Source: Azolla caroliniana (lineage: Eukaryota > Plantae > Polypodiophyta). Taken from it: a stretch of DNA of 64,000 nucleotides. The position numbers were made by a program, and so were the translations under genes. The stretch is from assembly GCA_043228905.1 (NCBI GenBank), contig JBHGNT010000017.1, positions 5,146,001 to 5,210,000 on the forward strand, in the 5' to 3' direction. Below are positions 11,297-48,640 of the stretch, piece by piece. The notes under the pieces are model-generated. The model made no database searches, was not told the DNA's origin, and worked only from the letters and a program-made list of their open reading frames with translations. The stretch's first letter is position 1. Each line of letters opens with the position of its first letter.

Positions 11297-11399
11297 GTCC
11301 AACCAAATGAGGAGCCGTTTGGTTGGACAACCCTAGATCTATACAACCCATTAGTGGTTCCATTCCCTCCAAGCAAGTTAGCAATGTGTTCCTAGCCCA

Positions 11400-21451: not shown

Positions 21452-24400
21452 TGTTGGGAATCGACGCTCTCCGATTCACCTTCACCGCTCGGCCACAACC
21501 GAGAAATCGCGAATCAATGCAGCAGAAAATAGGAAGCACAGAGAAAGACATGATAACACAGGGATTAACGTGGAAAACCCTATACGGGAAAAACCACGGG
21601 AGTGCAAGACTCCAAACCAAACTATGCACAGAGAAATATACAATGGCGAGCTGCAAGGCGACGACCTTGAGCTCGCTATCCTCGCCACAGGCGGCGGTAT
21701 TACACAGAGGCGTCGACCTCTTCCTCTCTCACGCTCTGTCTCTCTCTCACGGCTGCTCTCTCTTCACTCCTCTTGAGTGGAAAAACAGAAAAATGAGTAG
21801 CATCATTAAACCTGTTTGCCCTAAGTCATATTTATACACATATGACTTTGGGGCTATTTACAACTATAGCCTCAAGGGCCCTTGGCAAACATATTCACAG
21901 ATATGTCCCCGCATCCGGATCTCTCTCCGGGTACATTCGTCATCCGGCTCCGAAGCCGGGGTCTTCATCATCCGGTTCCGAAACCGCAACCGGGCTTGTC
22001 GGCATTCATCTCCGACATCCGACCATCCCATCCGAAGGGACCGTAATCCCAACAAACTCCCCCTTCACTTCGGCATGGGATGTCTCTCCAATCCGATCCT
22101 CTTCCGGCATGCTTCCAGCTTGTCGGGTGTGAGCACCTTGGTCAGCATATCCGACCCGTTCTCGTCCGTGTGGATCTTCGTCAGCACGAACTCCTTGTCT
22201 TCTATCCTTTCCCGGATCCAGTGATATCTTCGCTGGATGTGCTTCGTCCGGGAGTGATAGGCCGCGTTCTTCGCAAGGTGGATTGCACTCTCACTGTCGC
22301 AGTAGAGTCGGTACTCCTCCTGCCGGATACCGAGCTCTCTAATGAAGTCCTTCATCCATATTATTTCCTTGCCGGCTTCAATAGCCGCCATGTACTCCGC
22401 CTCCGTGGTTGACAACGCAACCGTCTTCTGCAGCCTCGACTGCCATGAAACAGCTCCCCCTACATACGTCATCACATACCCTGATGTGGACCGGCTGGTA
22501 TCTGCATCAGCCGACATATCCGAATCGGTGAAGCCGTCGAGTTCGGGCTTACCGGAGCCGAATCGGAGGCACACGTTTGCCGTGCCCTTCAGGTATCGGA
22601 GTATCCACTTGGCCGCGTTCCAATGCTCTTTGCCGGGATTGCTCATGTACCGGCTCACCACTCCGACTGCATATCCTATGTCCGGTCGGGTACACACCAT
22701 TGCGTACATCAAGCTCCCGACGGCAGAGGCATATGGTACTTTCATCATGTCCTCCTTCTCAGCCTTTGTCTTGGGGCTTTGCTTGCTGGACAGCTTGCAG
22801 TTTGCCGGGAGTGTTGACCCGACCGGTCTTGCTTCCGACATGTTGAACCGGTGAAGCACCTTTGTCACGTACTTCTCCTGTGACAGCCACAACTGCTTCT
22901 TCTTCCGGTCCCGGATGATGTGCATCCCTAGTATTTGCCTCGCCGGACCCAGGTCCTTCATTGAGAAGGTTCGGTGAAGAGCCTTCTTCAGCATCCGTAT
23001 CTTGACCTGGTCTCGTCCGACGATCAACATGTCGTCCACGTACAGGGGGAGTATTAGAAAGTCTCCTCCTTCGAACTTCTTCACAAACACGCAGTGGTCG
23101 GACTGCGTTTTGAGGTACCCTTCGTCGGTCATGAAAGAGTCAAACTTCCGGTACCATTGCCGGGGAGCCTGCTTCAGTCCGTAAAGGCTCTTCTTCAACC
23201 GGCATACCAGGTGCTCCTTCCCTTTCTTCTCGAATCCTTCCGGTTGCTACATGTAGATCTCTTCGTCGAGGTCACCGTGAAGGAATGTCGTCTTCACGTC
23301 CATCTGTTCTACCTCGAGGTCCATGCTTGCCGCTATGCTCAGCACCGTCCGGATGGAGGTCATCTTCACTACCGGGGCAAATATCTCGTCGAAGTCGACG
23401 CCCTTCTTCTGCTGAAACCCCTTCACCACGATCCTGGCTTTGTATCTCGGGGGGTTTCCGGCATCTCCCGGTTTCAGCTTGAACACCCACTTGTTACGGA
23501 GTGCCCGTTTTCCTTTCGGCAGCTCCACAAGTTCATATGTGTGGTTCTCGTGCAGGGAATCCATCTCCTCCTGCATGGCACTTAACCACCTGCGGCTATG
23601 GGTGTCATGCTTCGCTTCTTCAAAGCTTTCCGGCTCCCCTTCGTCGGTTAGCAGCACGTGCTCTGGTTCCGGAAATCTCCGGGGGGCCCTTCTCTCTCTT
23701 AGAGGATATCTCCGTTCCGGAGCTTCGGTAACCGGTTCTTCCTATTCTTCTTCATCCGAATCCATTTCGGGATCGGGGCCGGTTCCGGTATTATTTTCAT
23801 CTTCTTCGGCCGGTTCTGTTTCTTCACCGTCTTCGGCCGGATCCTCGAGTGCTAACCGGTCCCTTGCCGGTCGGGACTGCTCCTCGTAGAGTTGATCCTC
23901 ACCGGTCGACTTGGAGCTCTTCATCTTCTTCTCCGACTCCCAGTCGGCGAGTGTCTTGTTCTCCATGAAGATGATATCACGACTCCGGAATATCTTCTTG
24001 TCGACCGGGTCCCATACTCGGTAGCCGAACTCATCGTCGCCATAACCGAGGAGTATGCATGGCCGGGTCTTTGGATCTAGCTTTCCTCTCCGGTCCTTTG
24101 CCACATGCACATATGCGAGACACCCGAACACCTTCAGATGCCGGTAGGATACTTCCCTACCGGTCCACACTCTCTGCGGCGTGTCTCCGTCCAAAGGTAC
24201 TGAGGGTGATCTGTTTATCACGTATGTCGCCGTCGACATCGCCTCAGCCCAAAACCCCTTGGGTAATCCCGCATGCGCCAGCATACTCCGGACCCTCTCC
24301 ATTATGGTCCGGTTCATCCTCTCGGCCAGCCCGTTCAGTTCCGGCGTCTTCGGCACAGTAAACTCGAGCCGGATTCCCTTCGAGCGACAGTACTCCGCGA

Positions 24401-26776
24401 ACTGCCCCCGGTATTCCCCTCCGTTATCCGCTCGTATCGCTTTCAGCTTCTTGCCGGATTCTCTTTCCACTCTCGCGTGGAGTTCTTTGAAGACGGACAA
24501 TACTTGGTCCTTTGTCTTTAAGGGTGCCGTCCATAGCTTTCGGCTATGATCATCTATGAATGTTACGAAGTACTGGGCTCCGTCATGTGACTTCGTTTCT
24601 ACCTGACACACATCAGTGTGCACCAACTCCAATGGTGCGCTACGTCTCGTCGGTGGCCTTGAGTGGAAGGAGGTTCGGTTCTGCTTACCGGCCAGGCAAT
24701 CGGTGCACTTCTCCAGGTGCACATGCTTCACTGGAATAAGGTTGTCTTCTGCAAGCCTCTTCATCCCCTTCTCACTCATGTGGCACAGTCTTTTGTGCCA
24801 CAGCTCACCGGCAGTGTCGGCTGCCACATTCAGCTCTTCCGGACATAACCGGGCATTCATCAGGTACAGTGTGTTGACTTTCCGGGCCCGAGCCACTATC
24901 AGGCTCCCCTTGCTGAACTTCATTACGCCGTTCCGGATGCTACCTGTGTAGTCTTCATCGTCTAGCCTCCCGGCCGAAATCAGGTTCAATCGAACCTCCG
25001 GAACGTGTCGGACATCCTTCAGCAGCATTTTGCATTCGGTCGAGGTTGTCAACCACACGTCTCCTATGCCGGAAATCCGGCACGTACCTTCATTTCCCAT
25101 CCGAACACAGCCATGCTCACCGGCTGTGTAGGATGAGAAGTATCTTCTCTCCGGGGTCAGGTGGAACGATGCTCCGGAATCGACCACCCAGGTCGTCTCA
25201 TCGCCGGCAATGTTTAGTTCACCTTCTTCGGTGATGAGCATGATTTCTTCCTCACTTGCCGCGAGTGCCGTCGTTCCTTTCCGGTCCTGCCCTCGCCGAT
25301 CCGGACCTCTCCGGTCCGTGGCTCCCCGGTATGCACCGTTTCTCTCTGGTGACTTCTTCGAATCGGTGTCGTTGGCTCCGTTGTCCTTTCGGTAATGCCG
25401 ACAATTCTTTCGGAAGTGCCCCGGCTTCCCACAGTGGAAGCATGTGGGCCTTCCTCTTGACTGCGACCGGGTCCCCGACTTCTCCCGTCTTTGCGGACTC
25501 CGGTTCCATTGTCTTCCCCGTTCCGATTCGGTAAGCAGCGCCTTCGAGTCGGAGGCCGGTTCTTTATCTCTCCGACGCGCTTCTTCGTTCAAAATGCTTG
25601 TCTTTACCGTTTGTAGGGACAAGTTATCTTCGGTGCAGGAGGTGCTGAGAGTCACCACCAAGTTCTCCCAGCTGTCCGGCAATGTACACATCAGAATGAT
25701 GGCTTGTATTGCATCCTCCAGCGGGAACTTGATCGCCGCAAGCTGGTTCACGAATCCCATGAACGTGCTTACGTGTTCCACCATACTCTCGCCGTCCCGG
25801 TACTTGAGGTTCACTATCTTCCTCATCAGGGAGGTCCGGTTCAACGCATTCTTCCTCTCGTAGAGGCCCGACAGCTTCCGCCACATCTCATATGCGTTGG
25901 TGTCGTTCGCCACATGTTGTAGAACGCTCACGTCGACGTATTGCCGAATGGTTGCAACGGCTTTCCGGTTCAGAAGCCTCCATTCCGACTCAAGTACCCC
26001 CTTCGGTATTTCCGACCTGTCAATCGGTTCGTACAGGTCCCGAACAATCAGAAGATCCTCCATCTTGATCCTCCATCTTGTCGGTGTAATTCTGCGCATT
26101 CAGCACCATCATCCCTGGCTGCCCGCTGCTGCCGCCTTCCATTTTCTGCACTGCAGTCGCTCTGATACCAGATTGTTGGGAATCGACGCTCTCCGATTCA
26201 CCTTCACCGCTCGGCCACAACCGAGAAATCGCGAATCAATGCAGCAGAAAATAGGAAGCACAGAGAAAGACACGATAACACAGGGATTAACGTGGAAAAC
26301 CCTATACGGGAAAAACCACGGGAGTGCAAGACTCCAAACCAAACTATGCACAGAGAAATATACAATGGCGAGCTGCAAGGCGACGACCTTGAGCTCGCTA
26401 TCCTCGCCACAGGCGGCGGTATTACACAGAGGCGTCGACCTCTTCCTCTCTCACGCTCTGTCTCTCTCTCACGGCTGCTCTCTCTTCACTCCTCTTGAGT
26501 GGAAAAACAGAAAAATGAGTAGCATCATTAAACCTGTTTGCCCTAAGTCATATTTATACACATATGACTTTGGGGCTATTTACAACTATAGCCTCAAGGG
26601 CCCTTGGCAAACATATTCACAGATATGTCCCCGCATCCGGATCTCTCTCCGGGTACATTCGTCATCCGGCTCCGAAGCCGGGGTCTTCATCATCCGGTTC
26701 CGAAACCGCAACCGGGCTTGTCAGCATTCATCTCCGACATCCGACCATCCCATCCGAAGGGACCGTAATCCCAACA
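21452..26776 (-). mobile_element. Young full-length Ty1/Copia nested in a related Copia, TSD CAACC
   Basis: 603-bp LTRs 21452-22054 and 26174-26776 (two mismatches seen); PBS tggtatcagagc at 26159-26170; PPT next to 22055. Confidence 0.97.
22065..26142 (-). pseudogene. gag-pol: Copia gag-pol polyprotein with two premature TAG stops and an N-terminal frameshift
   Basis: CFHCGKPGHFRKNC, VVDSGAS, LWHKRLCH, DNGGEY, YVDD, ALSTTEAEY; in-frame stops at 23742 and 23247. Confidence 0.93.
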
Positions 26777-28565
26777 CAACCCACGTTGTCTCGTCGACGA
26801 CAAGGTTCAACTCACTCTCCTCGGTGATAAGCATTAGTTCTTCTTCACTTGCCGTGATCGCCGTCATTCCCTTTTGGTCTGGGCCTCCCCGATCCGAACC
26901 ATTTCAGTCCGGTAACTTCTTCGTGTCAGTACTATTGGTTTCCTTGTCCTTCTGGAAATGCCGACAGTTCTTCTGGAAGTGCCCCGGCTTGCCGCAATAG
27001 AAGCAAGTGGGCCTCCCCATTGACTTTGACCGTGTCCCCGACTTTTCCCGGTTCTGGGAACTCCGATTCCTTTGTATTCCGCGTTCCGATTCGGTAAGGA
27101 GGGCTTTCGCATCAGAGATTACCTCCTTCTCTCTCTGACACGCCTCCTCATCTAGCAAGCTCGACTTGACCTTTGCTAGGGATAACTGTTTTCCTTCCGG
27201 CCCGCCGTTGCCCAACGTGACAACTAACGTCTCCCAACTATTCGGGAGGGAACCGAGCAGGAGTAGGGCGAGTACCTCATCGGCGAGCGGTACTTCCAAC
27301 GAGGTTACTTGGTGTATCAGCCCTTGGAAGGCATTCATGTGCTCCGCCATACTAGAGCCGTCTTGGTACTGGAACCTCACTAGCTTCCGAAATACCGAAA
27401 CTCGATTAATGACATTCTTGTTTTGGAACATGATGCCGATCTTCTCCTAGAGTTCATGAGCCTTGCTGTCTTCATTGAAGTTGTTGTACAAGCTCATGTC
27501 GATGAAGCGCTGGATGTATGCCGTCGTCTTCATGTGCATCACCTCCCACATCATGGCGTCGATCTTATCCGGTCTCTTGTCCCTGAACTGAACCGAAAAC
27601 CAAAGATCTTTAACCACCAACATGTCCCTCATCTTCGACTTCCACACTGAGTAGTTCGAGCCGGTGAGATTGAACATGCCGCCGAAAGATTCTTCCATTT
27701 TTTGTGTTGTTCGCTCTGATACTAGTTTGTAGAGAAATGCGCAGAATATCGCTCGGCCACAACCGAGTAGTGAAAACACTTCTGTAAGAATCAAACACAG
27801 AAATAGGAAGTGGAGAGTACACAAGAAAAGGACGCAAGATGTTTTTGTGGAAAAAACCCTAATAGGGAAAAACCTCGGAAGCCCATAGACTCCGAACTAT
27901 CACTATGAAGAGAAAGGGGTACAATCAGAGACTTGGAGGCAACGACCTCGAGCTTTGTTTCTTCTCACAGTGGCGGTTACAATAGAGTATCGCTCTGTAT
28001 CTCTCTCTCACTCTCTCTCTATACAACAGTTACAGGAATATGACAACAACACAATCACACACTAAAGTAATTGCCCTAAGTCATATATATAGTTATATGA
28101 ACTTAGGGCTATTTATAAATATGGCCTCAATGGGCTTATTCAAGACATATTTACAAATCTATCTTCTCTTCCGGTTCTCACCGGGTCCACCGATCCGGTT
28201 TCCGGATCTCTTCCGGATCTCACCAGCTCTCTTTCGGTTCTCACCGAGTCCTCTTTATTCATTGCCGGATCCCATCCAAAGAGACCGATTTCCCAACAGA
28301 GATACCATGCTCTGATGATTTACAATGCTCTTGCGGGCTAGATCGACAAATTGGGCACTCACAAGTGCAGACTGCATCCTCTAGGGAGGAGCTATGGTGA
28401 CATAGAAGATTAACAGAGTCCTTGAGAAAACCCATTTGTACATGGTAAATACAACATGTGTATCGATCCTTTAAGCGTCTCACAAGGTGTGGCTTAAGAG
28501 ACTCGAGTGTTCGTAGTTACTTTGATATTTGGATGCATTTGCCTGAATGTAATAAATAAATCGAC

Positions 28566-31226: not shown

Positions 31227-32908
31227 TGCCCTATGCATGTTATATATATTTTAATATTTTCTACTATTTATTCATATTTATTAAATCGGTACTTTATAAG
31301 TTTTTCACGTAGTGTACGAAATACACTACGATACTCGCCCCCTCCGAACCCACACATCCTCCGGTATGTGCCGAAGTTGTCGGTGATTGTTAGTCTCGTC
31401 CGTCCGTTTTCCGCATGGTTGGTTTCGTCGCCGGTCATTTTTGGTTGCCGGCCCCTTTCGGTCTCCGGTTTTTGGTTGCTGACTTTGCCCGGTTTCCGTT
31501 TTGTTCGGTTGCAGGCTCTATCCGGTCTCCAATTACCGGCCCTCGTAATTCTTCTTTACTATCCATTTCTCTTGCTATGTCGGCTTTGTCTCTCCATTTT
31601 GAACACATCCATTCTTTCCACCCAAACCATTGTCGCCATCTGATCCACCATAGTCTTCGTTCGATTTTTGCATTGCTATGGCCTGCTTGGTCCTTGTCAT
31701 CCGTGGTAGTGTCTTTGCTTGGCCTCTTCCTTGTCTTTATCAATATTGATTTCTTTTCGGATCTCCGGTTGAGTCGGATTAGCTTCTTTCCGAATCGGTG
31801 TCGTCCGATCGTCTTTTGGTTGGATCGGCTTCCGTTCCGATTCGTATTCGGCCGATTCGGACTCGGTTGACCGGTTTTTACTGATTCGGCCCCCTTTCGG
31901 GTCGGTTTCGACCAATCGGTTTCCGTCTAGATTTTCTTTCTTTTCTTTGTTTTCACCGGTCTCGACCGGTTTGACTTCCGGAACTTCTTTCCTGATTGGT
32001 CTCATTCAATCGACTTCCGGTTGGAATGATTTACGTCCGTGTCGAACTCTCGAATTTTGTCCGGATCCACTTCTGCTTGCTTTAGAGGTGAAAGCATGAG
32101 AGTGGAAACAATTAGCTATGTCCTTGACATAGCTAATTAGCTATGCAAAAAGCTACCATTGATAAATAGTCATTTTAGCAAAAAGCCATCATTAATAAAT
32201 TGACTATGCAAAAAACTACCATTGAAAATACTAGAGTGTTTTAATTACATATGTAAATGAGCACCATAAATGTGCAACATAAATTGATATGTGCACCATA
32301 AATGTGTACCATAAATTATATATCAAATTCGTAGGTCCATTATGCATGATCCTTTGCCACATCACGTAGGCCATCTCTAGTTGAGTATTATGGGTTAGTT
32401 GCTACCACTGTTACTAAACCCTATCGAGTCCACCTATCGCCACTCTACACTCAGGGGCCGCTACTGTGAAGGTCGTGTATTGCTGCCACTTTTCGACCCG
32501 ACGGCGTTAACAACTCCACTACCGCCATTCTACTCTCAGTTGTCTTCTTTGTGCATTCCAAGCATCATCGGTAACTGTTCAATCTTTCGAGGTCCTCTCC
32601 TCCATTGCCATCATTCTACACTCAGTTGCCGCTACTGTCCAGTCCTGGATTGCTTCCACATTTCGATTTGACGGAGTTCACTCATCCAACGGCAACATTC
32701 TACACTCAGTTGTCGCCATTGGTCGGTCCTGGATCGCCTCCTCAACTGTTCGATCCAACGGAGTGAACTCCTCAACTGTTTGTTCTTGGATTGCAATAAC
32801 TTTTCTGTCTATTGATTATCTTGTGTATTGTGGAATATTTTTGTGTATTGTTGTTGCCCATAGCCATCTTAAATACTTGTTTTTTTTCTGGAAATTTAGG
32901 ATTTTAAT

Positions 32909-35900
32909 ATGTCCAGCCAAATGGAAGGGGAAGAAGGGTGTTTAGAATTACCCCTCAATGATAATAAGGATAGGGATGATGCTATTAGGACACAACAAGC
33001 CATACGAAACTATTGGGCAAAAAAAAAAAGGAAACATCGTCAATTGTTGAAGGATATGAAAGCCACACTCAGTAAAGGTAAAGATAGTTTAGCTGAGAAT
33101 GTAAGTAATGCGACTACAATCATAGAGAGAAAGGTTGTAGACTATTTCAATGTTCAAACCAAGCACATCAGCAATGAAGAAAAGAAGGTAGTACTTTATG
33201 GAATATTAAATGATCCATCGATAAAGGACTTAGTTGATTGTGATGGTCTTAATGCAAACATATCATCTATTTTAGTAAATAATCTTCGTGATAGTTTCGT
33301 ATCCATGAGCAGGTCAAAAGATGATCTTGTCTTAAAAAGGTCTAGTCTAATGATGTTACTTAATAGTGATGTTGACGATATAAACATCGGTGAGCTATAT
33401 TAAGGTATTTGGTGTTAGTAGAAAAATAGTGTACAATACATTGAACCATCTAATTTCCTCGGGTGAAGGAACTAGTCTACTAAAGCTAACTACAAGATGT
33501 AAGCCAATGACACCCATAACATCAGAAATCAAGGATGTAATCACAATGTTTTGGACTAATGAGAGTAGGGTTTCACCCAATAAAAAGGATTTATGCAGGA
33601 AACGTGTTGGAAGAAACCAATACGAGGAGCATCCCATTCGTCTTCTTGATGTACCTCAGGTATTTACATTTATCTCAACATTTGTTTTGACTGTACACAG
33701 AAAGTTAATTAGCTCAGTTAGCAGAAAAGCTAATTAACTTATCAATTACATTTACCTCAGTTAGCTACTAGGATAGCTACTACGTAGGTAACTGGCTACT
33801 CTCAATAGCTAATTTACTTACTACCAGATAATTAGCTACCAAAATAGCTAACTAGCTACCATGATAGCTAATTTGGTTATTACCAGATAATTAGCTACCA
33901 GAATAGCTAATTAGCTTTTAGGATAGCTAATTAGCTATTAGAATAGGGTTTTAGCTACCAAAATAGCTAACTACCTACCATGATAGCTAATTAGCTACTA
34001 TGATAGTTAGCTACTCTAGTTATTACCAACTAATTAGCTACTAGGAAACCTAATTAGCTACCATGATAGCTAATTAGGTACTAGGACAGCTAATTAATTA
34101 CCATGATAGCTAATTAGCTACTAGAACAACTAATTAGCTACTAGGACAACTAATTAGCTATTAGGATAGCTAATTAGCTACTAGGATAGCTAATTAGCTA
34201 CTAGGATAGCTAATTTCGTTATTACCAGCTAATTAGCTACTAGGAAAGCTAATTAGCTACCATGATAGCTAATTAGCTACTAGGACAACTAATTAGCCAC
34301 CATGATAGCTAATTAGCTACTAGACCAGCTAATTAGCCACCATGATAGCTAATTAGCTACTAGACCAGCTAATTAGCTACTAGGATAGCTAATTAGCCAC
34401 CATGATAGCTAATTAGCTACTAGACTAGCTAATTAGCTACCATGATAGCTAATTAGCTATGAGGACAGCTAATTAGCTACCATGATAGCTAATTAGCTAC
34501 TAGAATAGCTAATTAGCTACCATGATAACGAATTAGCTACTAGGACAGCTAATTAGCTACCATGATAGCTAATTAGCTACTAGAATAGCTAATTAGCTAC
34601 TAGGATAGCTAATTAGCTACTAGAATAGCTAATTAGTTACGAGAATAACTAATTCCCCTTTATTACGCAGGTTGATTTATTTATTAGGTTCAAACGAATG
34701 CATCCAAATATCAAAGTTCAACTACAAATATTCGAGTCTCTTAAGCCACACTTTGTGAGACGCTTAAAGGATCGATACACATGTTGTTGCATTTACCATG
34801 TACAGATGGGTTTTCTAAACGACTCTGTTAATCTACTACGTCACCATAGCGCATCCCTAACTAGTACAGTTTGCACATGTGGGTGCCCAATCTGTCGAAC
34901 AAGCCCGCAAGAGGAGTGTAAATCATCTGAGCACGTTATCTCTTCCATGAGTTATTTATTAGATTCAATATTGTGTCCGAGAGAAACTGACGCTATCTTC
35001 CATAGTCATAAATGTGTCATGGGTTTATGTCAAGATTGTGGCCCTACTAGATTTAGGTGGTGTCCAAATGAATTGAGTAGTGAAATATTGATCTCTGTGA
35101 AGTTATTTGAGTCAGTGAACACCAATTTCGAAGGAAAGGTGTGTAAAAGAAAGGATCTAGTTCGGAAGATGCTTAAACCAAGGGATTTGGTGTCACTGTT
35201 TGTAGTATCTCTAGGAAAGTTCATTAAACACAACTTCATTTATTCATGGCAGGCCCATCAGTTTAAGACTTGCATATCTGATTTCCCAAATGATGTAGTA
35301 GTCTTAGTAGTAGATTTCGCAAAGAATTATACTTTCAAGCAGCAGAATGAAATTCAATCTATGCATTGGTGTTCAGTTCAGGTAACCATTTTTGTGCACA
35401 TAACATATTTTCGAGTTTCAGGTGATGTTAAAAAAGTAATTCATTTCTTTATTTCTGATGATAAGAAGCATGATACCTTGTTCGTCCAACACTGTTTTAA
35501 GTTACATTGGCAGTGGTTATTAGCTCAACGTTTGGAGCTTACTCAACATTGGGTCTGGTCTGACGGAGCTGCGTCACAATTCAAGGCTCGACATCCATTT
35601 TATTTTGTGGGGAGGTATCTTGCTATAACAGGTTTGGAGATGAGATGGAATTTTTTTGGGTTTGGCCATGGTAAAGGTGAACATGATGGTGCAGGGGCTA
35701 TTATAAAGCAGGCACTTACCCATGAACAACTAAAGACAGATGGTGTGCACAAGAATTGTGCATCACATGTAGTTGAATTTTTAAGAACAAATATGTCAAC
35801 GAGTGCAATAGGTGTTTATTCCTAGCAAGTCCGAGATATCAAACGTGAATTTTGGGAAGTGACGATAGATGAAGTAAATAGGGAGAAGACCTAGGAGTGC

Positions 35901-36511
35901 CAAGGAATTCCCAAATTGCGATCTCTGCATGCTGTTCGCGGTTATTCCAGGTTGGATGGTCATTGTATTGCGGTTAGAGAATTGACTTGTTTTTGCTTCC
36001 ATTGTGTGCAGGGAAATTGGAGATATTGTCTAAACAAAGCATACATTCAGAATTGGGAGTATCACACTCTGAATGATAAGGAAGCAGTTGATGGAGAAAC
36101 AAGGCAGAATGCTCACTTCACATATGAGGGACTTGGAGATACTTTGAGTGATGTCCTGAACGTTGGGGATAACTTCGCTGTAAATGCTGAAGAAGGCAAT
36201 TCAGAGGGTGCTGATTTCTATATATTGAAGTGCACGGTTAGTAAATAGTGTGCAAGGTAGAATATTGTAGATGCATGGGGAAATTTGTATCTGTCGGGTC
36301 ATTCTACATCGAAGGCATTGTTTATGCAAAACTAGATGACTACGAATATGTGTACAGGCTGTTAGAAGACAAACCAATGACGTACATGTACTCTCATTTG
36401 GTCAGGTGCATCAACGTCCCAATGTCAGAATACAATAGCTGCTCAGGTTTATACATTGTTGGTGCTAATGTGTATGAATGTATTTACAATAGTATGCCAT
36501 GGAATTTGTAG
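32909..36511 (+). pseudogene. Spliced Sola2-like DDD transposase, copy A (intron 33660-34670)
   Basis: Splicing joins LLDVPQ|VDLFIRFKRMHP in frame. Motifs TCCCIYH, VVDFAKNY...QNEIQSMHW...QVT, ISDDKKHD, WSDGAASQFK, GHGKGEHDGAG and C-terminal CFCFHC. A few stops and frameshifts. Confidence 0.8.
33660..34670 (+). repeat. GT-AG intron made of TAGCTAATTAGCTA tandem array (20-bp period at 34180-34640)
   Basis: cag|gtattt ... ttacgcag|gtt; units such as tagctaattagctactagga and tagctaattagctaccatga. Confidence 0.92.
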
Positions 36512-38721
36512 CTACAAGTAGCAATTACCATGTTCTCTTGTAAAAGAAACATGTATTTTGCGAAAACAGTTAAATAAATTTGTTTGAGAATCAATTTCTT
36601 GTATATAGCCAGTAGCTAATTAGCTATCAGTAGCTAATTAGTTGTCAGTAGCTAATTAACTGTCAGTAGCTAAATAGTCATTAGTAGCTAATTAGTTGTA
36701 CATATGCAACTAATTGATAACCAGTAGCTAATTAGCTGCCAATAGAACCATGTACAACAATATGCCATGGAACTTGTAGCTACAAGTAGCAATTACCATC
36801 TTTTCGTGTAAAACAAACATGTATTTCGAAAATACAGTTAAATAAAGCACTAGCATGAAATCAACAATCTGCAACATATTCCTCAAATTACACAGTAGAT
36901 AAGTACAATGGGAACAAGTAATTAAATTCTTCATTGAATAATGTCATCTCTTTACATATTTATAAATTACCATTGGAAATGTCTACAAATCTCTTATAAA
37001 CAGCTAAGCTCTTCCTAGTCAGTGGAACGAGTCTACATATATTATCCGCATATCGAGCTCAGTATGGAGTCCACAACCATGCACCTAGTTGGCAGCTCAC
37101 TGTTTGCACCAGTACTGTTCAGGCATTTCCTTGAGTAGAATGAGACAGCAGCTTCGAATATTGAAGTAGTGCCGAAAATGTTCTGTATCCAAAATCAATG
37201 TGTTGTCGGCATTATATTCAAGCCAAGTAGCCCAAAAATCAGAAAGTCTCTTGAATCTTGCAGCTTCCATTTGCTCACAATTTTCTCGTGCCCATTGACC
37301 TTTAAAATGACTTCGCCATTTTGGGAAGAATCTCGCTAAACACTTCCACACATCTGATTTTGGTTTTTCACTCCAAATAAACAAATCAAAGTATTGCACA
37401 ACCCACTCTAGAAACTGATTCGTGTCCCTCCTTGGCTGCATATATCTCACACTCATCAAGACTTCATCAAGCTCCAAGATCAAGGCTCTTCTTTCGACTT
37501 CTAGTGGTTTAGGTTTCTATTCCTGAAACTGAGCCACTGTTACACCATTTTCTGGTAGGACACGATCAATCTCAATCAGCTCGGGTTCTGCCGACACAAT
37601 TGGCGTCCTTTTCCTCTTCAAACCCCCAGTCGACTGTGTTGGGCCTGACTTCACATTCTGGTGCTCTTGTTTTGTTGACTTCGTTATCAATCCTTGGCTT
37701 ACCTCGGTGCATGTAGCTACTGATCTGCTCGATATTAGTCCACTGGTATCACATGCTGCATCTACCTGCAACATCGAGTCATCTGTGCAACATGCTTGAT
37801 CAACTTGTGTGACCAGATCAGTTGTGTCAGTTGCTACATCTACTTTCAAGATGGGGCCCTTTAAACACGCCGCAACATCAACAGTATCCACACTGCCATC
37901 GGCCTTACGAGCAATAGAATCAAACCCTTTAGACTCTGCAACATCAGAAAACACCGACATATTCACACTCACAAAGTAACTAACAGTCTCAGAAAACAAC
38001 ATAATGAACATCAAAGAGTTTCAGTCATAGAACAACACTCTTCAAATTATCATGGAAAAACATCATAGAGTTCCATTACATAATGTGGATCAAGCAACAA
38101 CCAATCTGAGGTTTTACTTGTCCAACAGGATAGTAAAACTTCATAAAACCCTAGCAAAATCCCTAAGCTAACAATCATACCCAACTAAACAGTATTTCGC
38201 TCCACTACGTCTGGGCCCCTTGACCGAGTAACTGGTCTTGTTCCCGATCGTGGCCCCTTCTTCAGCCTTTTTCTGGTTGATTGCCCATTTAGCCTTGCTT
38301 CTTTCACCCAATGCGCAAGTGTGTCCTCCTTCGACAACCTTCCCATCGCCTCGGCAGCTAATTGCACATCAGCCGTTTCTTGCGCTAGCTTTTCAAGTAC
38401 AGAGGGATCTGTTTGGACATTTTCAGTAGTTGGGCTCGGTGGGGTGGAATCAAGGTCTTGAGATTCGAAGAAATGTTGTATCAAGTGTTCAAAAACATTG
38501 TTGTTGTGAACCTCAGTTTTTACATGTTGTTTCCACTATTTCATGGCATTTCACATCGTTGCCTAATTTAGTACATTGTTCCAAAAGAATAGGGTGGAGC
38601 TGATCCGAAGGAGATGTGATAGCAGGACTCTCACTTTCAGCCACGTTGGCAACTATCTCCTCATCTGTTGCAGTGTCATTAGCACCAGACACATCATGTG
38701 CCGTCCTTAATCCACAAGATT

Positions 38722-39801
38722 CTACAATAACATGGCAGCTATTTAGGATAGCTAATTAGCTACTTTACTAAACTATGGTACTAGCTAGGATAGCTAATTA
38801 GCTAGTACGATAGCTAATTAGCTACTTTACTCAACTATGGTAGTAGCTAGGATAGGTAATTAGCTACAAGGATAGCTAATTAGGTACTTTACTCAACTAT
38901 GGTAGTAGCTAGGATAGGTAATTAGCTACAAGGATAGGTAATTAGCTACTAGGATAGCTAATTAGCTACTTTACTCAACTATGGTAGTAGCTAGGATAGC
39001 TAATTAGCTACTTTACTCAACTATGGTAGTAGTTAGGATAGCTAATTAGCTACTTTACTCAACTATGGTAGTAGTTAGGATAGCTAATTAGCTACTTTAC
39101 TCAACTATGGTAGTAGCTAGGATAGCTAATTAGCTACTTTACTTAACTATGGTAGTAGCTAGGATAGCTAATTAGCTACTTTACTCAACTATGGTAGTAG
39201 CTAGGATAGATAATTAGCTACTTTACTCAACTATGGTAGTAGCTAGGATAGCTAGTTAGCTACTAGGATGGCTAATTAGCTACTTTTCTCAACTATAGTA
39301 ATAGCTAGGATAGCTAATTAGCTACTAGGATAGCTAATTAGCTACTTTCTCAACTATGTAGTAGCTAGGATATCTAATTAGCTACTAGGATAGCTAATTA
39401 GCTGCCAGTAGCTAATTAGCTACTTTACACAACTATGGCAGTAGCTAATTAGCTAGTAGGATAGCTAATTAGCTAGTAGTTAATTAGTTGCCAGTAGCTA
39501 ATTAGCTAGTAGGATAGCTAATTAGCTTTTTTACACAACTATGGTACTAGCTAATTAGCTATGAGTAGCTACTCATAGCTAATTAGCTAGTACCATCGTT
39601 GTGTAAAAAAGCTAATTCGCTAATTAACTACTGTAGTAAACTATGGAAGTAGCTAATTAGCTACTAGGATAGCTATTAGTTGCTTTAATCAACTATGGTA
39701 GTAGCTAATTAGCTACAACGATAGCAACAAAATAGTTTCCATACTTTTTACGGCTTAGCTAATTAGAAAAGACTAAGCTTATTAGCTACAATATGGTATA
39801 C
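38722..39801 (-). repeat. Accessory-gene intron filled with TAGCTAATTAGCTA array (42-bp higher-order unit)
   Basis: Unit tactttactcaactatggtagtagctaggatagctaattagc (e.g. starts at 39051 and 39093); minus-strand cag|gtatac and ttgtag|aat. Confidence 0.9.
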
Positions 39802-40874
39802 CTGTTAGTTTTCTCCAGTCATTTGGTAGAGCTGTACTACAATCTCCCAAACAGAATGCAACAATTCGACAGGCATATTGAAAACAAAGCAGATGGTATG
39901 TGTGGTTGCATGGTTCCAGGTGAACCAACAAAGACACAGTTTTGTCCTCCACACCTAACCCGCAAGCGATGCAACGTGCTTGATGTCAATAAATCATTTT
40001 CTGGTTCTCCTTCATTTGGTAAGGGAGCTATTCCTGTCTGAGAAGGATACACCAACTTTGCTCAAGAATCGTTAACTTACTTGAAGCTTTTCCAAATTGT
40101 AATCTGCAACAATATTTACACCTAGAAGGTCCAGGTTCATTGAAAGAACCTGGATCTCTGTTTGCAGTTGTATTTTACGTTGGGGATCTAGTGGCCCCTC
40201 TAATTCAAGCTCCTGTTGCGCAACCTATTCCAAATAATGCTTGATTAGCACATTTTACCCTTAAAGTTATTTATAACACAATCACATACCAACAAAACAA
40301 TAGTTACATGAATCTTATTTCTAATTGTTGTAACAACTAAAGTAACTTTGCTCTCCATTGCAGAAGCCATTGTGGCTTTCTCTAAATCAGTCTTAAAAAA
40401 TGCCAATGTCTCACAGGCTTCATGGACATTTTTTAGCACATAGCTAACCAATGTCTCACCTATATCATCGACATTTTGCTGGGAGTTGGCAGTTGTATCA
40501 ACAACTGCCACGCTCCAAAATCTGTCTATTTTTTGTGCCAAGGTCCCCATCGTTCGGCATCTTTCTACCGATGCCTCACCATAGACTGCCCAAGCTACCC
40601 TATACCTTTTAGGGTCTCTAGATTCCTTCGCTGTTTTGCAGTACTCATATGCAAATGCTCTAGCAAATGAAACTGACAACTCATTGTTGACTGGGATCTC
40701 TTGATGAACTTTCTGGTGCAGCCTCATGCAGTCATCGTACAAGTCGGCTCATACATGCTTCAACTTGACCTTGCCTTTGACTCTAGGAACTGCATATACA
40801 GTCCTCCAATCTACATCACTGATCAATTTATCACTTAGGACAGCATGGTCAATGACAGGAACTACACGCCCCCT

Positions 40875-42883
40875 ATGCGCAATGCTCGGCCAAACCCGAG
40901 CTTAGAATCATACACAGAAAAACGGGAATGAGTGGGCGACATAGTGAAGAGAAGAATGCACAGGATGTTTACGTGGAAAAACCCAAACTAGGGAAAAAAC
41001 CACGGCAGCCCACATGCTGCAAACTATCACTATGTTACAGTGTACAACAGTAAAGCACCGAGGCAACAACCTCGAGCTTTCTATCTTCGCCACAGGCGGC
41101 GGTTACAACAGAGGCAACGACCTCTTCCTCTCTCTCTCTTTCTCTCTGTACACAGTTACGCGCTCTGATCTTGCACAAACAAGAATGACAACAACTCTAC
41201 TAAGTTTGCCCTAAGTCATATTTATATTAATATGACTTTTCGGCTATTTACAAATATAGTCCCGATGGACTCTCAGAAACATATTTATGAATATGTCCCT
41301 TCATCCGGTGAGCACTCCTCACCGGGCCTGCATCATCTGGCGCTTGCCGGGTACTTGTCATCCGGTTCTCACCGGGTCTTCCGTAGCTGGGTACTCCTCG
41401 TCTGGTTTCGGCCTCGACTAAGTTTGCTCATCAACACTGTTCTTCTCACTTCCCATCCGGAGGGACCTGTCTCCCAACAAACTCCCCCTTCACTCCGACA
41501 TGGGGTGTGTTACTAGTCCGATCCGCTTCCGGCATGCTTCCAGCTTGTCAGGTATCAGCACTTTGGTCAGCATATCTGACCCGTTCTTGGCCGTGTGGAT
41601 CTTCGTCAGCGCGAACTCCTGATCATCTACTCTTTCCCAGATCCAGTGATACCTTCGGCGGATATGCTTCGTCCGGGAATGGTAGGCCGCATTCTTAGCA
41701 AGGTGGATGGCACTTTGACTGTCGCAATAGAGCTGGTATTCATTTTGCCGGATACTGAGCTCTCCGATGAAGTCCTTCATCCATAATATTATTGGGAGAC
41801 AGGTCCCTCCGGATGGGAAGGGAGAAGAACAGTGCCGATCGGCCTCAGCCGAAACCGTATGAGGTGGACTCGGCTACGGAGGGCCGGATGGTGTAGACCC
41901 GGTATGAACCGGATGAGGAGTACCCGGCTATGGAGAGTCGGATGGTGCAGACCCGGTATGAACCGGATGAGGAGTACCCGGCTACAGAGAGCCGGATGGT
42001 GCAGACCCGGTGAAGACTGGATGAGGAGTACCCGGCTACGGAGAGCCGGATGATGCAGACCCGGTGAAGACCGGATGAGGAGTACCCGGCTACGCAGAAC
42101 CGGATGAAGAGACATATTCGTAAATATGTTTTCTGATAGTCCATCGGGGCTATATTTGTAAATAGCCGAAAAGTCATATTAGTATAAATATGACTTAGGG
42201 CAAACTCTTAGCTGTTGTCATTTTCTTGTTGGTGCAAGAAGAGAGAGCGTGTAACAGTGTACAGGTTGGGAGAGAGAGAGAACGAGGTCGTTGCCTCTGT
42301 TGTAACTGCCGCCTGTGGCGAAGATCGTGAGCACGAGGTCGTTGCCTCCATGAACTCACTGTTTATACATTCCAATATAGTGATAGTTTGCAGCCTGTGG
42401 GCTGCCGTGGTTTTTCCCTCAGTTTGGGTTTTCCACGTAAACATCCTGTCTACCTTTTTTTTCTTCTCCTTTGTGTCGTGCATTTGTTTCCCGTTTTCTG
42501 TGTATGAAAAGAATCTCGGTTGTGGCCGAGCTATGGACATAAGGAGCGTTGAGTTCCCATCAAATATTTCCTTGCCGGCTTCCACAGCCGCCATGTACTC
42601 CGCCTCCGTGGTTGACAATGCAATTGTCTTCTGCAGCCTCAACTGCCACGAAACAGCTCCCCCTGCATATGTCATTACATACCTAGATGTAGACCAGCTG
42701 GTATCCACATCAGCCGACATGTCCGAATCGGTAAAACCGTCAAGTTGAGGTTTACCGGAGCCGAATGGGAGACACATATTTGAAGTGCCCTTCAAGTACC
42801 GGAGTATCCATTTGACCGCGTTCTAGTTTGCTCATCAGCACTGTTATTCTCACTTTCCATCTGGAGGGACCTGTCTCCCAACA
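40875..42883 (-). mobile_element. Internally deleted Copia remnant (LTR to 41479, PPT, RNase H, LTR tip 42825-42883)
   Basis: MKDFIGEL...YCDSQSAIHLAKN...HPMSE; LTR family motifs. Confidence 0.85.
41790..42562 (+). mobile_element. Copia solo LTR, TSD AATAT
   Basis: aatat at 41785-41789 and 42563-42567; inverted near-copy of 3038-3811 including the 54-bp repeats. Confidence 0.93.
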
Positions 42884-42989
42884 GTCAACACCCTCAAGTG
42901 ACAGACCATAGGTGTTGTGGAAGTCCTCCTTTGTCTCACAAAATTTTGCGAAGTTTAGCACTCTCAGATACGGAGGAACGAGCCATCTG

Positions 42990-43965
42990 AAATATCAAAT
43001 CAGAAATCAGAAATAGTGCAAAATCAGAATATGTCAGAATCAGAAACCCCAATCAACAACAACAGAAATAGTTCAAAATCATTAACTTAGCAAATCAGAA
43101 ACCCCTTTCAAAAATTGCAATAAGATATTTGTAAACAGAAACCCTAATCATAATTTGTATTTAGAAATTTGAAATAAAAAACCCGAATCAAAATCTGTAA
43201 TCAGAAGTTTGTAACCAGAAACCCTATTAAAAAATTCTAATCAGAAATTTATAATCAAAAACCCTAATCAGAAATTTTAATCAGAAAATTGTAACTAGAA
43301 ACAGAAACCCTAATCATAATTTGTATTCAGAAATTTGAAATTAGAAACCCTAATCAAAATCTGGAATCAGAAGTTTGAAATCAGAAACCCTAATCAAAAT
43401 CTGTAATCAGAAGTTTGTAACCAGAAACCCTATTCACAAATTCTAATCAGAAATTTATAATCAAAAACACTAATAAGAAATTTTAATCAGAAACCATAAA
43501 CAGAAAATTGTAACCAAAAACAGAAACCCTAATCATAATTTGTATTCAGGAATTTGAAATCAGAAACCCTAATCAAAATCTGTAATCAGAAGTTTGAAAT
43601 CAGAAACTCTAATCAAAATCTGTAATCAGAAGTTTGTAACCAAAAACCCTATTCACAAATTCTAATCAGAAATTTATAATAAAAAACCCTAATAAAAAAT
43701 TTCAATCAAAAACCCTAATCAAAAATTTCAATCACAAACCCTAATCAGAAATTTATAAACAAAAACCCTATTCAGAAATTCTAATAAGAAATTCTAATCT
43801 GTAATCAAAATTTGTAACCAAAAACCCTATTAAGAAATTCTAATCAGAATATATAATCAAAAACCCTAATCATAAATTTCAATCACAAACCCTAATCAGA
43901 AATTCTAATCAGAAATTTATAAACAAAAACCCTAATCAGAAATTTCAATCAGAAACCTCAATCAT
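42990..43965. repeat. Degenerate telomere-like satellite (agaaaccctaatc / atcagaaattt units)
   Basis: Many AAACCCTA(A) copies interspersed with related 13-14-bp units. Confidence 0.88.
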
Positions 43966-45393
43966 CACTAAAGACAGGATTAAACACAAAAAAAGTAATA
44001 TAAACACACATGCTGCTACTCCCCGATCTGCGAGACATCCTTGTATGGGACTCCAAGGACTTCGCCCTATTCAATTTTGGGGAAATATGAATCGGCACTA
44101 AAGTTCAGACAGTAGTCAAAAAGAAAAAACAAATGTTTGGGGTTTCTGTAACTGAAACATACCTGGACGATGATTGAGCGGGTTCTGTGTTGTAGCTCTA
44201 AATCTGCAATGTCGATTTTCTGCTACTACGGGAACTACGTCTGCGTTCGTGCTATGAGTACTCCATCTGCGTTCAAAATCAAACTTAGGCTAAACAAGAA
44301 ATTGATGACATTGAAGTCGACCTTAGATGATGGTGCTATTCCCCAAGTTCCACTACGTTTGAAACAGAAGTTCAAATATTTGAGTTTTTTCATAAATTAG
44401 TTTTTCAAATATTTGATTTTCACACAAAAAAGACACAAATAGCTAATTAGCTATGGCCATTTTAGTAGCTAATTAGCTATAATGGTGTTTCCACTCGCAT
44501 GCTTTTATCCTTAGCTTTCTTTTAGACCAGAATTTCGGACGGATCATCTTCCATCCGAACCAGCTTCCGACTTTACCTTTCTTGCCGCCATCTCCCGTCT
44601 CTCCGGTCTCACGTTGCTTCTCAGACGCAACCGCCGAAGTCTCTAGGATTAGTGCGCATGAACCCTTTGTATTATCATCCTCTGTCATTTCAACCATAGC
44701 CTCCTTCTCGGCTATCTCCCGGTTGTATGAATCGGCCTCGACCTTTGTTTCCTCTCCACCACCTTCCGTCTCTTCGGTCTCACGTTGCCTTTCGAACGCT
44801 GTCGTGCCTTTCGGCTCCGGATCGTTTGCGTGAGTCGGGTGGGAACCACTGGGGTTTTGGACTAGGAAGAAGAGAGTTTTAAGGCTAATAAGAATATAAA
44901 TATGTTGTAAGAAAGAGTTATAGCAAACTCGTGAATCCCACGAGTGTATTGTATTAGATTAATCAATATGAATATAAGAATATAAACTTCGGTTGAAAGA
45001 GAATGATATAGAATTCTCGTGAATCCCACGAGTATAGTTTATTAATTGGTGTTTTTTAGAAACATATCTAGTTTCCAAATATTTTTCACACGCCTATTAC
45101 ATTGTGCTCCCCATCCTTATGTAGTGATGGGAGAGACTAAGCATAGCTACATGCTTTTTCTAATATGTTCATGCACACTAAATGTGCATGTGATGCTTTT
45201 CTAATCCTTGCTTTTATTTGCTAAATATAGTGCTCATGCACGCTAGATGTGCATGAGTCACTTTTTAGTTGCTTGCGTTTTTCTATAAAATATTCACGCA
45301 CTCTAAAAATGCACGATTTACCTTTTAATAAAGGTAGGTGCAAATAAAGCACTTATAGTTATTAAATCTATTTGTAGAACACTAAAGATAAGG

Positions 45394-45447
45394 TAGCATA
45401 ATGGTAAAGTTGAGGTTTGGCTACGTGGAGGTACAGGGTTCGAATCC
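45394..45447 (+). promoter_or_regulatory. Consensus Pol III A box + B box in 3' LTR
   Basis: TAGCATAATGG, 32 nt, GGTTCGAATCC; both match the TRGCNNARYGG and GGTTCGANTCC consensus. Confidence 0.78.
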
Positions 45448-45511
45448 TGCCCTATGCACGTGATAAATATCTTGATACATTATTTTATTTATTTATATGT
45501 AATTAAATCGG

Positions 45512-47095
45512 TTATATTATTTTTACTTTTTCACGTAGTGTACGAAATACACTACGACACTCGCCCCCTCCGAACCCGCACATCCTCCGGTATGTGCCGA
45601 AGTTGCCGATGCTCGTTGTCTCCCCTTCATCCTCCGTTTGTCCCGCTATGTCAACTTTGTCTCTCCATTTTGAGTAGACCCATTCTTTCCACCCGAACCA
45701 TTGTCGCCATCCGATCCACCATATTCTTTGTTCTCTCTCGTTATATTCTTGGCCCTTGTCATTCGTGGTAGTGTCTTTTACTGGCCTCTTTGTTGTCTTA
45801 ATCAACCTTGACTTTTTTCCGGATCGCTCTCGTCCGATCGACTTTTGGTTTGATCGGCTTCCGATCGGATTCGTATTCAGCCAAGTCAGACTCGGTCGAT
45901 CGGTTTTGACCGAGTTGACCCCTTTTCGGGTCGGCTTTCTTTCGGGTCGTCTTTCGGCCGAATCCTCATTCGCCCGGTTCGGCTTTCGTTTGTGTCGTCT
46001 TTCGGCCGAATTCTCTTCCTTTCGGTTCGGCTTTCTTTCGGGTCGACTTTTGGTCGAATCCTCTTTTACCCGGTTCGGCTTTCTTTCGGATCGGAATCCC
46101 GTCCGGATCACCTTCCATCCTAATTGGCTTCCGACTTTACCTTTCTTGCCGCCACCTCCCGTCTCTCCGGTCTCACGTTGCTTCTCAGACACAACCGCCG
46201 AAGTCTCTAGGATTAGTGGGTAGGAATCCTCGGTATTATCATCTTCCGTTGTTTCACCCATAGCCATGTTCTCCTTGGCTATCTCTCCTTCGTATGCATC
46301 GGCTTCGACCTTCGTTTCGTTGCCGCCACTTTCCTTATCTTCGGTGTTATGTCGACACCCGGGCTCCAGTACCGAAGTCTCCGAAACAATGGTGAAGGAA
46401 TCCCTTCGTTCGTGCTCATTTACTTTGTCTTCCTCGTTGCCCTTCCGGTCCTCCACTTTTCCACCGACACATTCCGTCTCTCCGGTCTCACGTTGGTGCA
46501 CGGGCACAGCCGCCGAAGTCTCTGGAACCGGTGTGGGGATACCCTTTCGTCCTCGATCTTCCTCCTCCTCGTCCTTTGTTGGCCTCGACTTTGGTTCGGT
46601 TTTAAGCTCCCCTTCAATGTCGACTTGCGACTTTTCATGCATCTCCGAACCCTTCCGCATCAAGCTCTCCTTCGGTGGTAGTCGGTGGCCGCTTTTCACC
46701 CACTGTTGACCGCCGTTCGTGGACCATGTCCTCGTCCGCTTCGGTCTTAGATAGTCATATGTGTCTCGTATAGCTTCTTCAAAGGACTCCCACATCGGGC
46801 TTTGTTGTCGTATCTCGTGGATTCTCTCTTGAAGCTCATCCGTAGCCACCCGGTTGAAAGATAACACTTGCAATCTTTCTGAGATACCATATCGCAACAT
46901 CTCCATTTTGTAGTCACGTAGATAGCGTGACACATCGTTTCCGTTGAATTGTCCTTTTCGTTGTACGAGCCGCTTTACTGCCCCCGTGATCTCCGACATC
47001 ACTCGTTGTTCTTGTAGCATCCGCTCGAACATCATCATCATCGTTATACTCATTGCCTCTTGTTGATTCTCCATCTCCTTGCCACCCGCCTTCAC
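45512..47095 (-). CDS. gag: Gag-derived protein: capsid-like N-terminus plus charged low-complexity repeats
   Basis: Uninterrupted 527 codons. KGQFNGNDVSRYLRDYKMEML resembles IGRFSGKDATKYLASYGAEML of the autonomous gag. ETSA...QRETGET and ERKPNR repeats. Confidence 0.75.
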   Translation of the reverse strand: MKAGGKEMENQQEAMSITMMMMFERMLQEQRVMSEITGAVKRLVQRKGQFNGNDVSRYLRDYKMEMLRYGISERLQVLSFNRVATDELQERIHEIRQQSPMWESFEEAIRDTYDYLRPKRTRTWSTNGGQQWVKSGHRLPPKESLMRKGSEMHEKSQVDIEGELKTEPKSRPTKDEEEEDRGRKGIPTPVPETSAAVPVHQRETGETECVGGKVEDRKGNEEDKVNEHERRDSFTIVSETSVLEPGCRHNTEDKESGGNETKVEADAYEGEIAKENMAMGETTEDDNTEDSYPLILETSAVVSEKQRETGETGGGGKKGKVGSQLGWKVIRTGFRSERKPNRVKEDSTKSRPERKPNRKEENSAERRHKRKPNRANEDSAERRPERKPTRKGVNSVKTDRPSLTWLNTNPIGSRSNQKSIGRERSGKKSRLIKTTKRPVKDTTTNDKGQEYNEREQRIWWIGWRQWFGWKEWVYSKWRDKVDIAGQTEDEGETTSIGNFGTYRRMCGFGGGECRSVFRTLREKVKII

Positions 47096-47706
47096 GTCGG
47101 GTTCACCAACTGTGTCGTGCCTTTCGGCTCCGGATCGTTTGCGTGAGTCGGGTGGGAACCACTGGGGTTTTGGACTAGGAAGAAGAGAGTTTTAAGGCTA
47201 ATAAGAATATAAATATGTTGTAAGAAAGAGTTATAGCAAACTCGTGAATCCCACGAGTGTATTGTATTAGATTAATCAATATGAATATAAGAATATAAAC
47301 TTCGGTTGAAAGAGAATGATATAGAATTCTCGTGAATCCCACGAGTATAGTTTATTAATTGGTGTTTTTTAGAAACATATCTAGTTTCCAAATATTTTTC
47401 ACACGCCTATTACATTGTGCTCCCCATCCTTATGTAGTGATGGGAGAGACTAAGCATAGCTACATGCTTTTTCTAATATGTTCATGCACACTAAATGTGC
47501 ATGTGATGCTTTTCTAATCCTTGCTTTTATTTGCTAAATATAGTGCTCATGCACGCTAGATGTGCATGAGTCACTTTTTAGTTGCTTGCGTTTTTCTATA
47601 AAATATTCACGCACTCTAAAAATGCACGATTTACCTTTTAATAAAGGTAGGTGCAAATAAAGCACTTATAGTTATTAAATCTATTTGTAGAACACTAAAG
47701 ATAAGG

Positions 47707-47760
47707 TAGCATAATGGTAAAGTTGAGGTTTGGCTACGTGGAGGTACAGGGTTCGAATCC
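47707..47760 (+). promoter_or_regulatory. Consensus Pol III A box + B box in 5' LTR
   Basis: Identical to 45394-45447. Confidence 0.78.
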
Positions 47761-48640
47761 TGCCTTATGCACGTGATAAATATCTTGATACATTATTTTA
47801 TTTATTTATATGTAATTAAATCGGTTATATTATTTTTACTTTTTCACGTAGTGTACGAAATACACTACGACACTCGCCCCCGCCGAAGTCTCTGGAATCA
47901 GTGGTGGGGAAGTCTTGATATGGCCATCCGCCATTGGTTCATCCATAGCCACCTTCGATTCGATGTCATCTTTCGTGGCGACCTCCTCAATCAAGTCTTC
48001 CTTGCTCTCTTTCACTGCATCAATTATGCAAACATCAATTATTCTTACCCCTTTTTCACCCGATGTTTTGGACACTTGTAGTCCAAAATCTTCTTCTACA
48101 CTTGGGTTATCGGCCTTATCCTTCGTCATCGTTCTTTCGCAAGACAAGAGGGTAGCTTCTTTTACACCCTCTTCCGTCACACCATCATGTTGTATTTCGG
48201 CCTTCATATCGGCTCCATCGTTTGTCTCCAATCGACCATCCTTCATCGGCCATGTCGTTGACAAGATTCTCATCTTCCTCTCATCATGTCTCCGGCATAC
48301 CCTTTGGACTTCGGCCCAATCTTCGGTAAGACCATTCACACCGTCATTGTCTTCGAGTTCGATCCCGATGTCCATCCTTTCTTTTCGATCGATCGATTTT
48401 ACGAACATTAGGACTTTATCCTCTCCCACCAATCTTTGTTCCCGCTTCGAGAGTCGAGCAAAACGATGCTCGAGCTCTTCGGTAGGTCTTCTCCGATGCC
48501 ACTCATTCGTCGAATTCTCGTCGATCTTGTCCCTTCGATCTCTTGAAATCATATGCCTCTCGTAAAGCTTCTTCAAAGGACTCCCATGTCGGGTTTTGTT
48601 GCCCTATTTTGTGGATTCTCTCTTGTAACTCATCTGTGAC

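Follow-up and report, generated by a model that had tools for sequence, protein, structure and literature searches.

A decayed Sola2 DNA transposon of Azolla caroliniana carries a second gene and palindromic motif arrays that may form an anti-silencing module

The DNA analysed here (the window) is a stretch of 64,000 nucleotides from Azolla caroliniana (assembly GCA_043228905.1, contig JBHGNT010000017.1, positions 5,146,001 to 5,210,000 of the forward strand); coordinates below are those of the window. At 32086-44510 it contains a DNA transposon with two convergent genes, a transposase on the plus strand and a second gene, called gene 2 here, on the minus strand. We conclude with high confidence, in respect of both its identity and its anatomy, that this element is a Sola2 DNA transposon from a streptophyte lineage, once autonomous and now decayed. 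Sola2 DNA transposons were reportedly described by Bao et al. in 2009. A preliminary description of the locus had proposed a Sola2-like transposase and a two-gene make-up; both proposals stood, the former supported by comparison with the motifs of published Sola2 proteins.

The transposase is encoded by two exons. Exon 1 (32909-33659, plus strand), whose start codon is unproven, has a frameshift near 33400; in intact relatives the corresponding region gives weak helix-turn-helix matches. A putative GT..AG intron in phase 0 (33660-34670) separates it from exon 2 (34671-36511), which encodes a Cys-rich region, a DDD core and a C-terminal tail. The catalytic Asp codons lie at 35313, 35562 and 35685, and the motifs named in the preliminary description, DFAxNY (35313), SDGxxxQFK (35559) and HGKGxxDG (35667), are all present; the first motif of the window transposase has an E-to-K change. 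In the family alignment D206, D289 and D330 are invariant or nearly so, with the motifs DF.EN, WSDG...QFK and HGKG..DG. The order and spacing of the motifs (DF.EN, SD..H, WSDG...FK, HGK...D) match, in a comparison by eye, those of the published proteins Sola2_DFa-2 and Sola2_PPa-1, taken from the supplement of PMC3627910. The structure model of an intact relative with 94% identity has an RNase H/integrase fold; Mos1 and retroviral integrases match it with Z scores of about 10. The hAT insertion domain is absent from this model, in which 41 residues separate the second and third Asp and Hermes aligns across the core only. When the proteins were searched against databases exon by exon, the transposase gave no match in Pfam, as expected for Sola. 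The window copy is dead: exon 2 has stops at 35823, 35892 and 36246 and a further frameshift near 36290, and a 2-kb long terminal repeat (LTR) insertion lies in gene 2.

The span of the element was set by alignment to the ends of related elements, which were gathered through their transposases and gave a table of 18 termini (related loci are denoted by handles such as L001). The terminal inverted repeats (TIRs), at 32086-32110 (plus strand) and 44486-44510 (minus strand), are 25 bp long and match at 21 of 25 positions. The family end reads GGGT[AG]AAAGCATG, and each window end has one G to A change within the first three bases (G1 on the left, G3 on the right). Directly outside lie the two copies of a perfect 4-bp target site duplication (TSD), TTAG, at 32082-32085 and 44511-44514 (no strand applies), placed by comparison with the related termini; the chance expectation of such a match is about 0.5%. 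Sola2 TIRs typically start with GRG: GGG opens 17 of the 18 related termini, Sola2 DFa-2 starts with GAG, and PPa-1 does not fit. In the related elements, similarity to the flanks stops immediately outside GGGT[AG]AAAGCATG or its lineage variant. At the long-read locus L001 (54% transposase identity) a 22-bp TIR is perfect and the TSD matches at three of four positions (TCCA/TTCA); no TIR/TSD pair was callable in the distant loci L042-L108. The insertion target of the window element was an old LTR-type element, and the reconstructed empty site aligns gap-free for TTAG to a paralogous LTR-type element at about 46060. This alignment is not decisive alone, as an 8-bp model scores similarly in this low-complexity sequence.

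The preliminary description, which gave the span as 32075-44521, had drawn the boundaries of the element 3 bp too far out and had read the ends as Ac/Ds-like, with a TSD of either 4 bp (GCTT) or 8 bp (matching at seven of eight positions). It proposed a hAT-mobilised shell around a foreign, Sola-like transposase or, alternatively, a Sola-related lineage with unusual TA-starting ends. The 11-mers that it quoted are indeed found at 32083 and 44513, where the letters look like TAGGGATGAAA; they differ by G/A only, their inverted match extends over about 28 bp, and the TIR-like pair occurs only once within the window. However, none of the 18 related termini is directly preceded by TAG or TAA, and none has the (T/C)A start of a hAT end like TAGGGATGAAA. 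The TA belongs to the target site, and the supposed Ac/Ds signature consists of three target bases followed by a GGGT-type end; over its first eight bases the TIR agrees with Ac positions 4-11 at seven. The TSD is 4 bp long, as had been suggested, but its sequence is TTAG and not GCTT, since the related termini place the ends elsewhere. They likewise reject the 8-bp duplication that a hAT element would leave, and at the corrected ends the 8-bp flanks mismatch both in the window element and in L001. The transposase architecture is unrelated to that of Ac/Ds, and Pfam gave no match to a BED finger or a hAT dimerisation domain in the element proteins. The same GGGT ends travel with homologous transposases of 41 to 94% identity, across lineages. 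Because its signature is made up of target bases and a GGGT-type end, the hAT-mobilised shell is refuted, and we give practically no credence to it or to a TA-ended Sola lineage. A mariner-type TA reading of the ends was also rejected, as the flanks of relatives do not fit it, and so was a Zator reading: Zator TSDs are 3-bp TWA, and the flanks of the related termini are not.

In the tail of the transposase, at model residues 477-600, the only matches outside the RNase H fold are eight BAH domains (DNMT1, ZMET2, MTA1, EBS, DIM2, ORC1, AIPP3 and TNRC18), with Z scores of 6.0-6.8 and a root-mean-square deviation (rmsd) of 2.6-3.8 over 79-95 residues. The C-terminal domain is BAH-like by predicted fold. 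About 20 distant homologues, which cluster with the plant clade (FastTree support 0.98), have a tail of this kind too, and it is therefore no peculiarity of the window family; distant Sola2-type transposases with a BAH-like tail include P0114, P0117, P0130, P0135, P0141, P0158, P0183 and P0208. Judging from the model, the tail may read chromatin or bind a partner during targeting, a role that we consider quite possible, at somewhat less than an even chance.

Gene 2 encodes, in this order, a novel, conserved N-terminal domain of 145 residues (N-domain), a coiled coil, a RING-H2 domain, an acidic linker and an FCP1/NIF domain of the HAD fold (NIF). Its exons run on the minus strand. The N-domain exon has its 5' part at 42884-42986 and its 3' part, with the coiled coil, at 40308-40852; the RING-H2 exon (39802-40028), a putative intron (38722-39801), the acidic linker exon (38188-38721, with a frameshift near 38520) and the last exon region (36963-38038) follow, the last containing a low-complexity linker and the NIF domain as well as stops and a frameshift. 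Besides these frameshifts, gene 2 of the window is disrupted by a deletion, about 140 bp having been lost at 40028/40029 relative to L009, and by a 2,031-bp insertion at 40853-42883 (no strand assigned). This LTR-retrotransposon-derived insertion is bounded by TG..CA and a 5-bp TSD, GTCAA. It is later than the element, being missing from relatives, and it contains a nested inverted solo LTR 96% identical to 3038-3809. The union of N-domain, RING and NIF in one protein is a putative join made from sequence; in an Adiantum gene model (P0370) a single protein carries both the N-domain and NIF.

For the two genes, named relatives were found in a fern (Adiantum nelumboides), in Cryptomeria and Klebsormidium, and in a liverwort (Calypogeia). 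The full layout of gene 2, convergent with the transposase, recurs at L001, L005, L006, L009 and L109, L032 and L033 have NIF in the matching position, and in sister lineages (L020, L042, L045, L086 and L088) that position is taken by an N-domain or RING gene. Gene 2 and the transposase are still found together in elements as diverged as about 45% identity. The NIF-bearing elements form one clade (support 0.98) in a tree that left out loci with a broken catalytic open reading frame, among them L005, L033 and L109. Between L009 and L006, the ratio of nonsynonymous to synonymous substitution (dN/dS) is 0.16 for the transposase, 0.18 for the N-domain, 0.33 for RING and 0.42 for NIF, with a range of 0.4-0.55 for the linker and NIF parts. 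Gene 2 is kept under purifying selection. Two loci may be recorded here: the close relative L030 (7107-8510, minus strand) has 60% transposase identity, its own array motif and convergent low-complexity open reading frames, with no NIF detected within the contig, and the distant L020 (1543-11766; 41%) has GGGT TIRs and a convergent coiled-coil/RING gene, with neither NIF nor motif array.

The Cys/His pattern of the RING domain is intact. In most relatives motif I of NIF is DxNG, with DD kept in motif IV; in the window subfamily motif I is degraded to ELDxVL (ELDEVL in the window), with LDT or VDT at motif IV. The signature of an active FCP1/SCP enzyme, DxDx(T/V) in motif I together with DD in motif IV, was found neither in the window subfamily nor in its relatives, and NIF of the window subfamily is probably, from its sequence, a pseudo-phosphatase. 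The N-domain was modelled with a pLDDT of 91. It has no match in the PDB (best Z 2.8), and its nearest Atlas models are PF20167 and the plant mobile domain (PMD) PF10536, each at a TM score of 0.52. DUF1985 gave no match among 15 N-domain members, and PF10536 and PF20167 are also without a sequence match. The resemblance of the modelled N-domain to the PMD is borderline and serves as a lead only.

A 14-bp palindrome occurs in 39 copies in the element, mostly in the two introns. Array 1, in the transposase intron, has a 20-bp period, and array 2, in the gene 2 intron, is built of 42/62-bp units; a small cluster lies between the convergent genes (36600-36740), with one subterminal copy at 32130-32143 and two at 44440-44479. 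At the corresponding places, in both introns and near both ends, every lineage carries a short motif of its own, palindromic in most cases. The motif core is CTAATTAG in the window, GTAGCTAC in L001, L004 and L109, CTAGCTAG in L005, of the GGTAATTAGT type in L030 and AGGTGAAAA in L033. In the distant moss-like loci the arrays are weak or absent. Upstream of the N-domain exon, probably in a first intron of gene 2, an AT-rich repeat (43040-43960) contains 13 of the 17 teloboxes (AAACCCTAR) of the window. It is also found in L009 and L012, with fewer copies in L006, and is absent in L001. In Arabidopsis, teloboxes recruit the Polycomb complex PRC2 via TRB proteins.

Among the closest known systems are the published Sola2 elements: they share a DDD transposase with colinear motifs, a 4-bp TSD and short imperfect TIRs, they too exceed 10 kb, and they have a second gene, which in DFa and PPa encodes Fanzor1 (PMC3627910). 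They differ in that the cargo here is N-domain/RING-H2/NIF, not Fanzor, and in that targets here are not restricted to AWWT. In layout, the element resembles VANDAL transposons with their VANC proteins, which target family-specific tandem repeats (PMC5735166): both are DNA transposons with an accessory gene and family-specific short tandem motifs outside coding exons. VANDAL, however, is a MULE, and gene 2 of the window has no Pfam match to DUF1985 and adds RING-H2 and a HAD-fold domain. The parallel is one of layout, and motif binding and demethylation by gene 2 are putative. PMD proteins target palindromic DNA motifs, oppose Polycomb and resemble the DUF1985 domain of VANC (bioRxiv 10.1101/2024.09.27.615353), and they pair or fuse with PP7-type phosphatases, as do MAIN, MAIL1 and MAIL3 with PP7 or PP7L (PMC7156037). 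With these, gene 2 would share a helical domain associated with transposable elements next to a phosphatase-type domain, a palindromic target motif and teloboxes nearby; the differences are that the phosphatase fold here is HAD/FCP1 and not PPP, that the carrier is a Sola2 element and that PMD homology is unproven.

From established DDE chemistry, the transposase would bind the ends, excise the element and insert it with a 4-nt stagger; the class of the enzyme together with the TSD implies this cut-and-paste mode. By analogy, the most likely job of gene 2, above any single rival, would be that of a self-specific anti-silencing factor, although we put it clearly below an even chance. The N-domain would bind to the motif of its own lineage, which is arrayed in the two introns and close to the termini, and would bring the RING-H2 ubiquitin ligase and the FCP1-type (pseudo)phosphatase module to the element, keeping it transcribed. 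We favour this role because the layout parallels VANDAL/VANC and because PMD proteins counter Polycomb at motifs that are palindromic. Taken as a whole, the proposal is more tentative still: Sola2 elements of seed-free plants may have independently evolved an anti-silencing module, composed of a PMD/VANC-like domain, RING-H2 and an FCP1-type (pseudo)phosphatase and co-evolving with lineage-specific palindromic arrays, in addition to a chromatin-reading, BAH-like transposase tail.

The arrays could instead be binding sites of the transposase, subterminal sites having been amplified in the introns by slippage, with gene 2 acting as a cofactor of transposition or host interaction (like CACTA TnpA or the second protein of PIF/Harbinger) or as an E3 ligase controlling transposase turnover. 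In each lineage the motif also lies within 70 bp of both ends, the usual position of transposase sites, and arrays are missing from some relatives that do have the accessory gene. Yet most motif copies are intronic in both genes, far from the ends, L033 differs from the window in its motif with a nearly identical TIR, and a PMD-like fold with a phosphatase module would point to chromatin or transcription and not to synapsis; we regard this explanation as somewhat less likely than the anti-silencing role. That gene 2 is a captured host sequence, carried as passive Pack-type cargo beside neutral minisatellites, would agree with the degraded NIF motif and with the dN/dS of the linker and NIF parts, but is improbable: purifying selection largely refutes it, the RING pattern is intact, the N-domain has a dN/dS of 0.18, and the position and orientation of gene 2 are fixed across a supported clade, with N-domain or RING genes in sister lineages too.

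Several observations weigh against a Sola2 element with an anti-silencing module. The assignment to Sola2 rests on motifs compared by eye. The flanks of the two-ended short-read contigs L006, L009, L012 and L020 do not match; these are probably collapsed copies, and because of them the TSD evidence comes down to two non-chimeric two-ended loci, the window element and L001. Sequence searches of the BAH-like tail gave no match, and its Z scores are under 8 throughout, and the N-domain matches nothing in Pfam or the PDB and shows a borderline likeness to the PMD, at TM 0.52 and rmsd 4.6. In L020, L042 and L045 no clear array accompanies the accessory gene. Finally, the element is CG-depleted, with an observed/expected ratio of about 0.5 against about 1.2 in the flanks (0.35-0.54 in exons within 32909-40852, and 1.1-1.25 in neighbouring retroelements), which points to long methylation of the family.

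The window is dense in repeats, with chromovirus-type gypsy, other gypsy and copia elements. A second, older copy of the Sola2 family, 75-85% identical, lies at 9103-30446 on the minus strand, interrupted at about 9657-14700 by a chromovirus-type insertion and at about 17772-28298 by nested copia elements; its ends were not found in the window. At 44800-47887, a young small LTR element (LTRs 99.7% identical; a 527-residue open reading frame without Pfam match) has inserted into an older element related to it, the one in which the Sola2 copy also resides.

Mosses and ferns are known to have Sola elements, the plant records that we found being Sola1 (Physcomitrella) and an unspecified SOLA (Azolla), and Sola2 with a second gene, Fanzor, is known as well. 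A literature search that covered few subscription journals and did not extend to Repbase Reports found no description of the accessory gene, the arrays or the BAH-like tail, and nothing on Sola with BAH or on FCP1 or RING in an accessory gene of a DNA transposon. The corrected ends, GGGT with a 4-bp TSD, permit proper annotation of the family, and if Sola2 transposases do have a BAH-like domain, chromatin may guide their targeting. The survival of transposons under methylation and Polycomb silencing has been shown in very few systems, mainly VANC. If the proposed role of gene 2 is true, it would constitute a second, unrelated anti-silencing system, in which protein-motif pairs that differ between lineages offer a testable specificity code; it could yield motif-targeted epigenome tools, and it would bear on the open idea that PMD proteins encoded by transposable elements oppose Polycomb.

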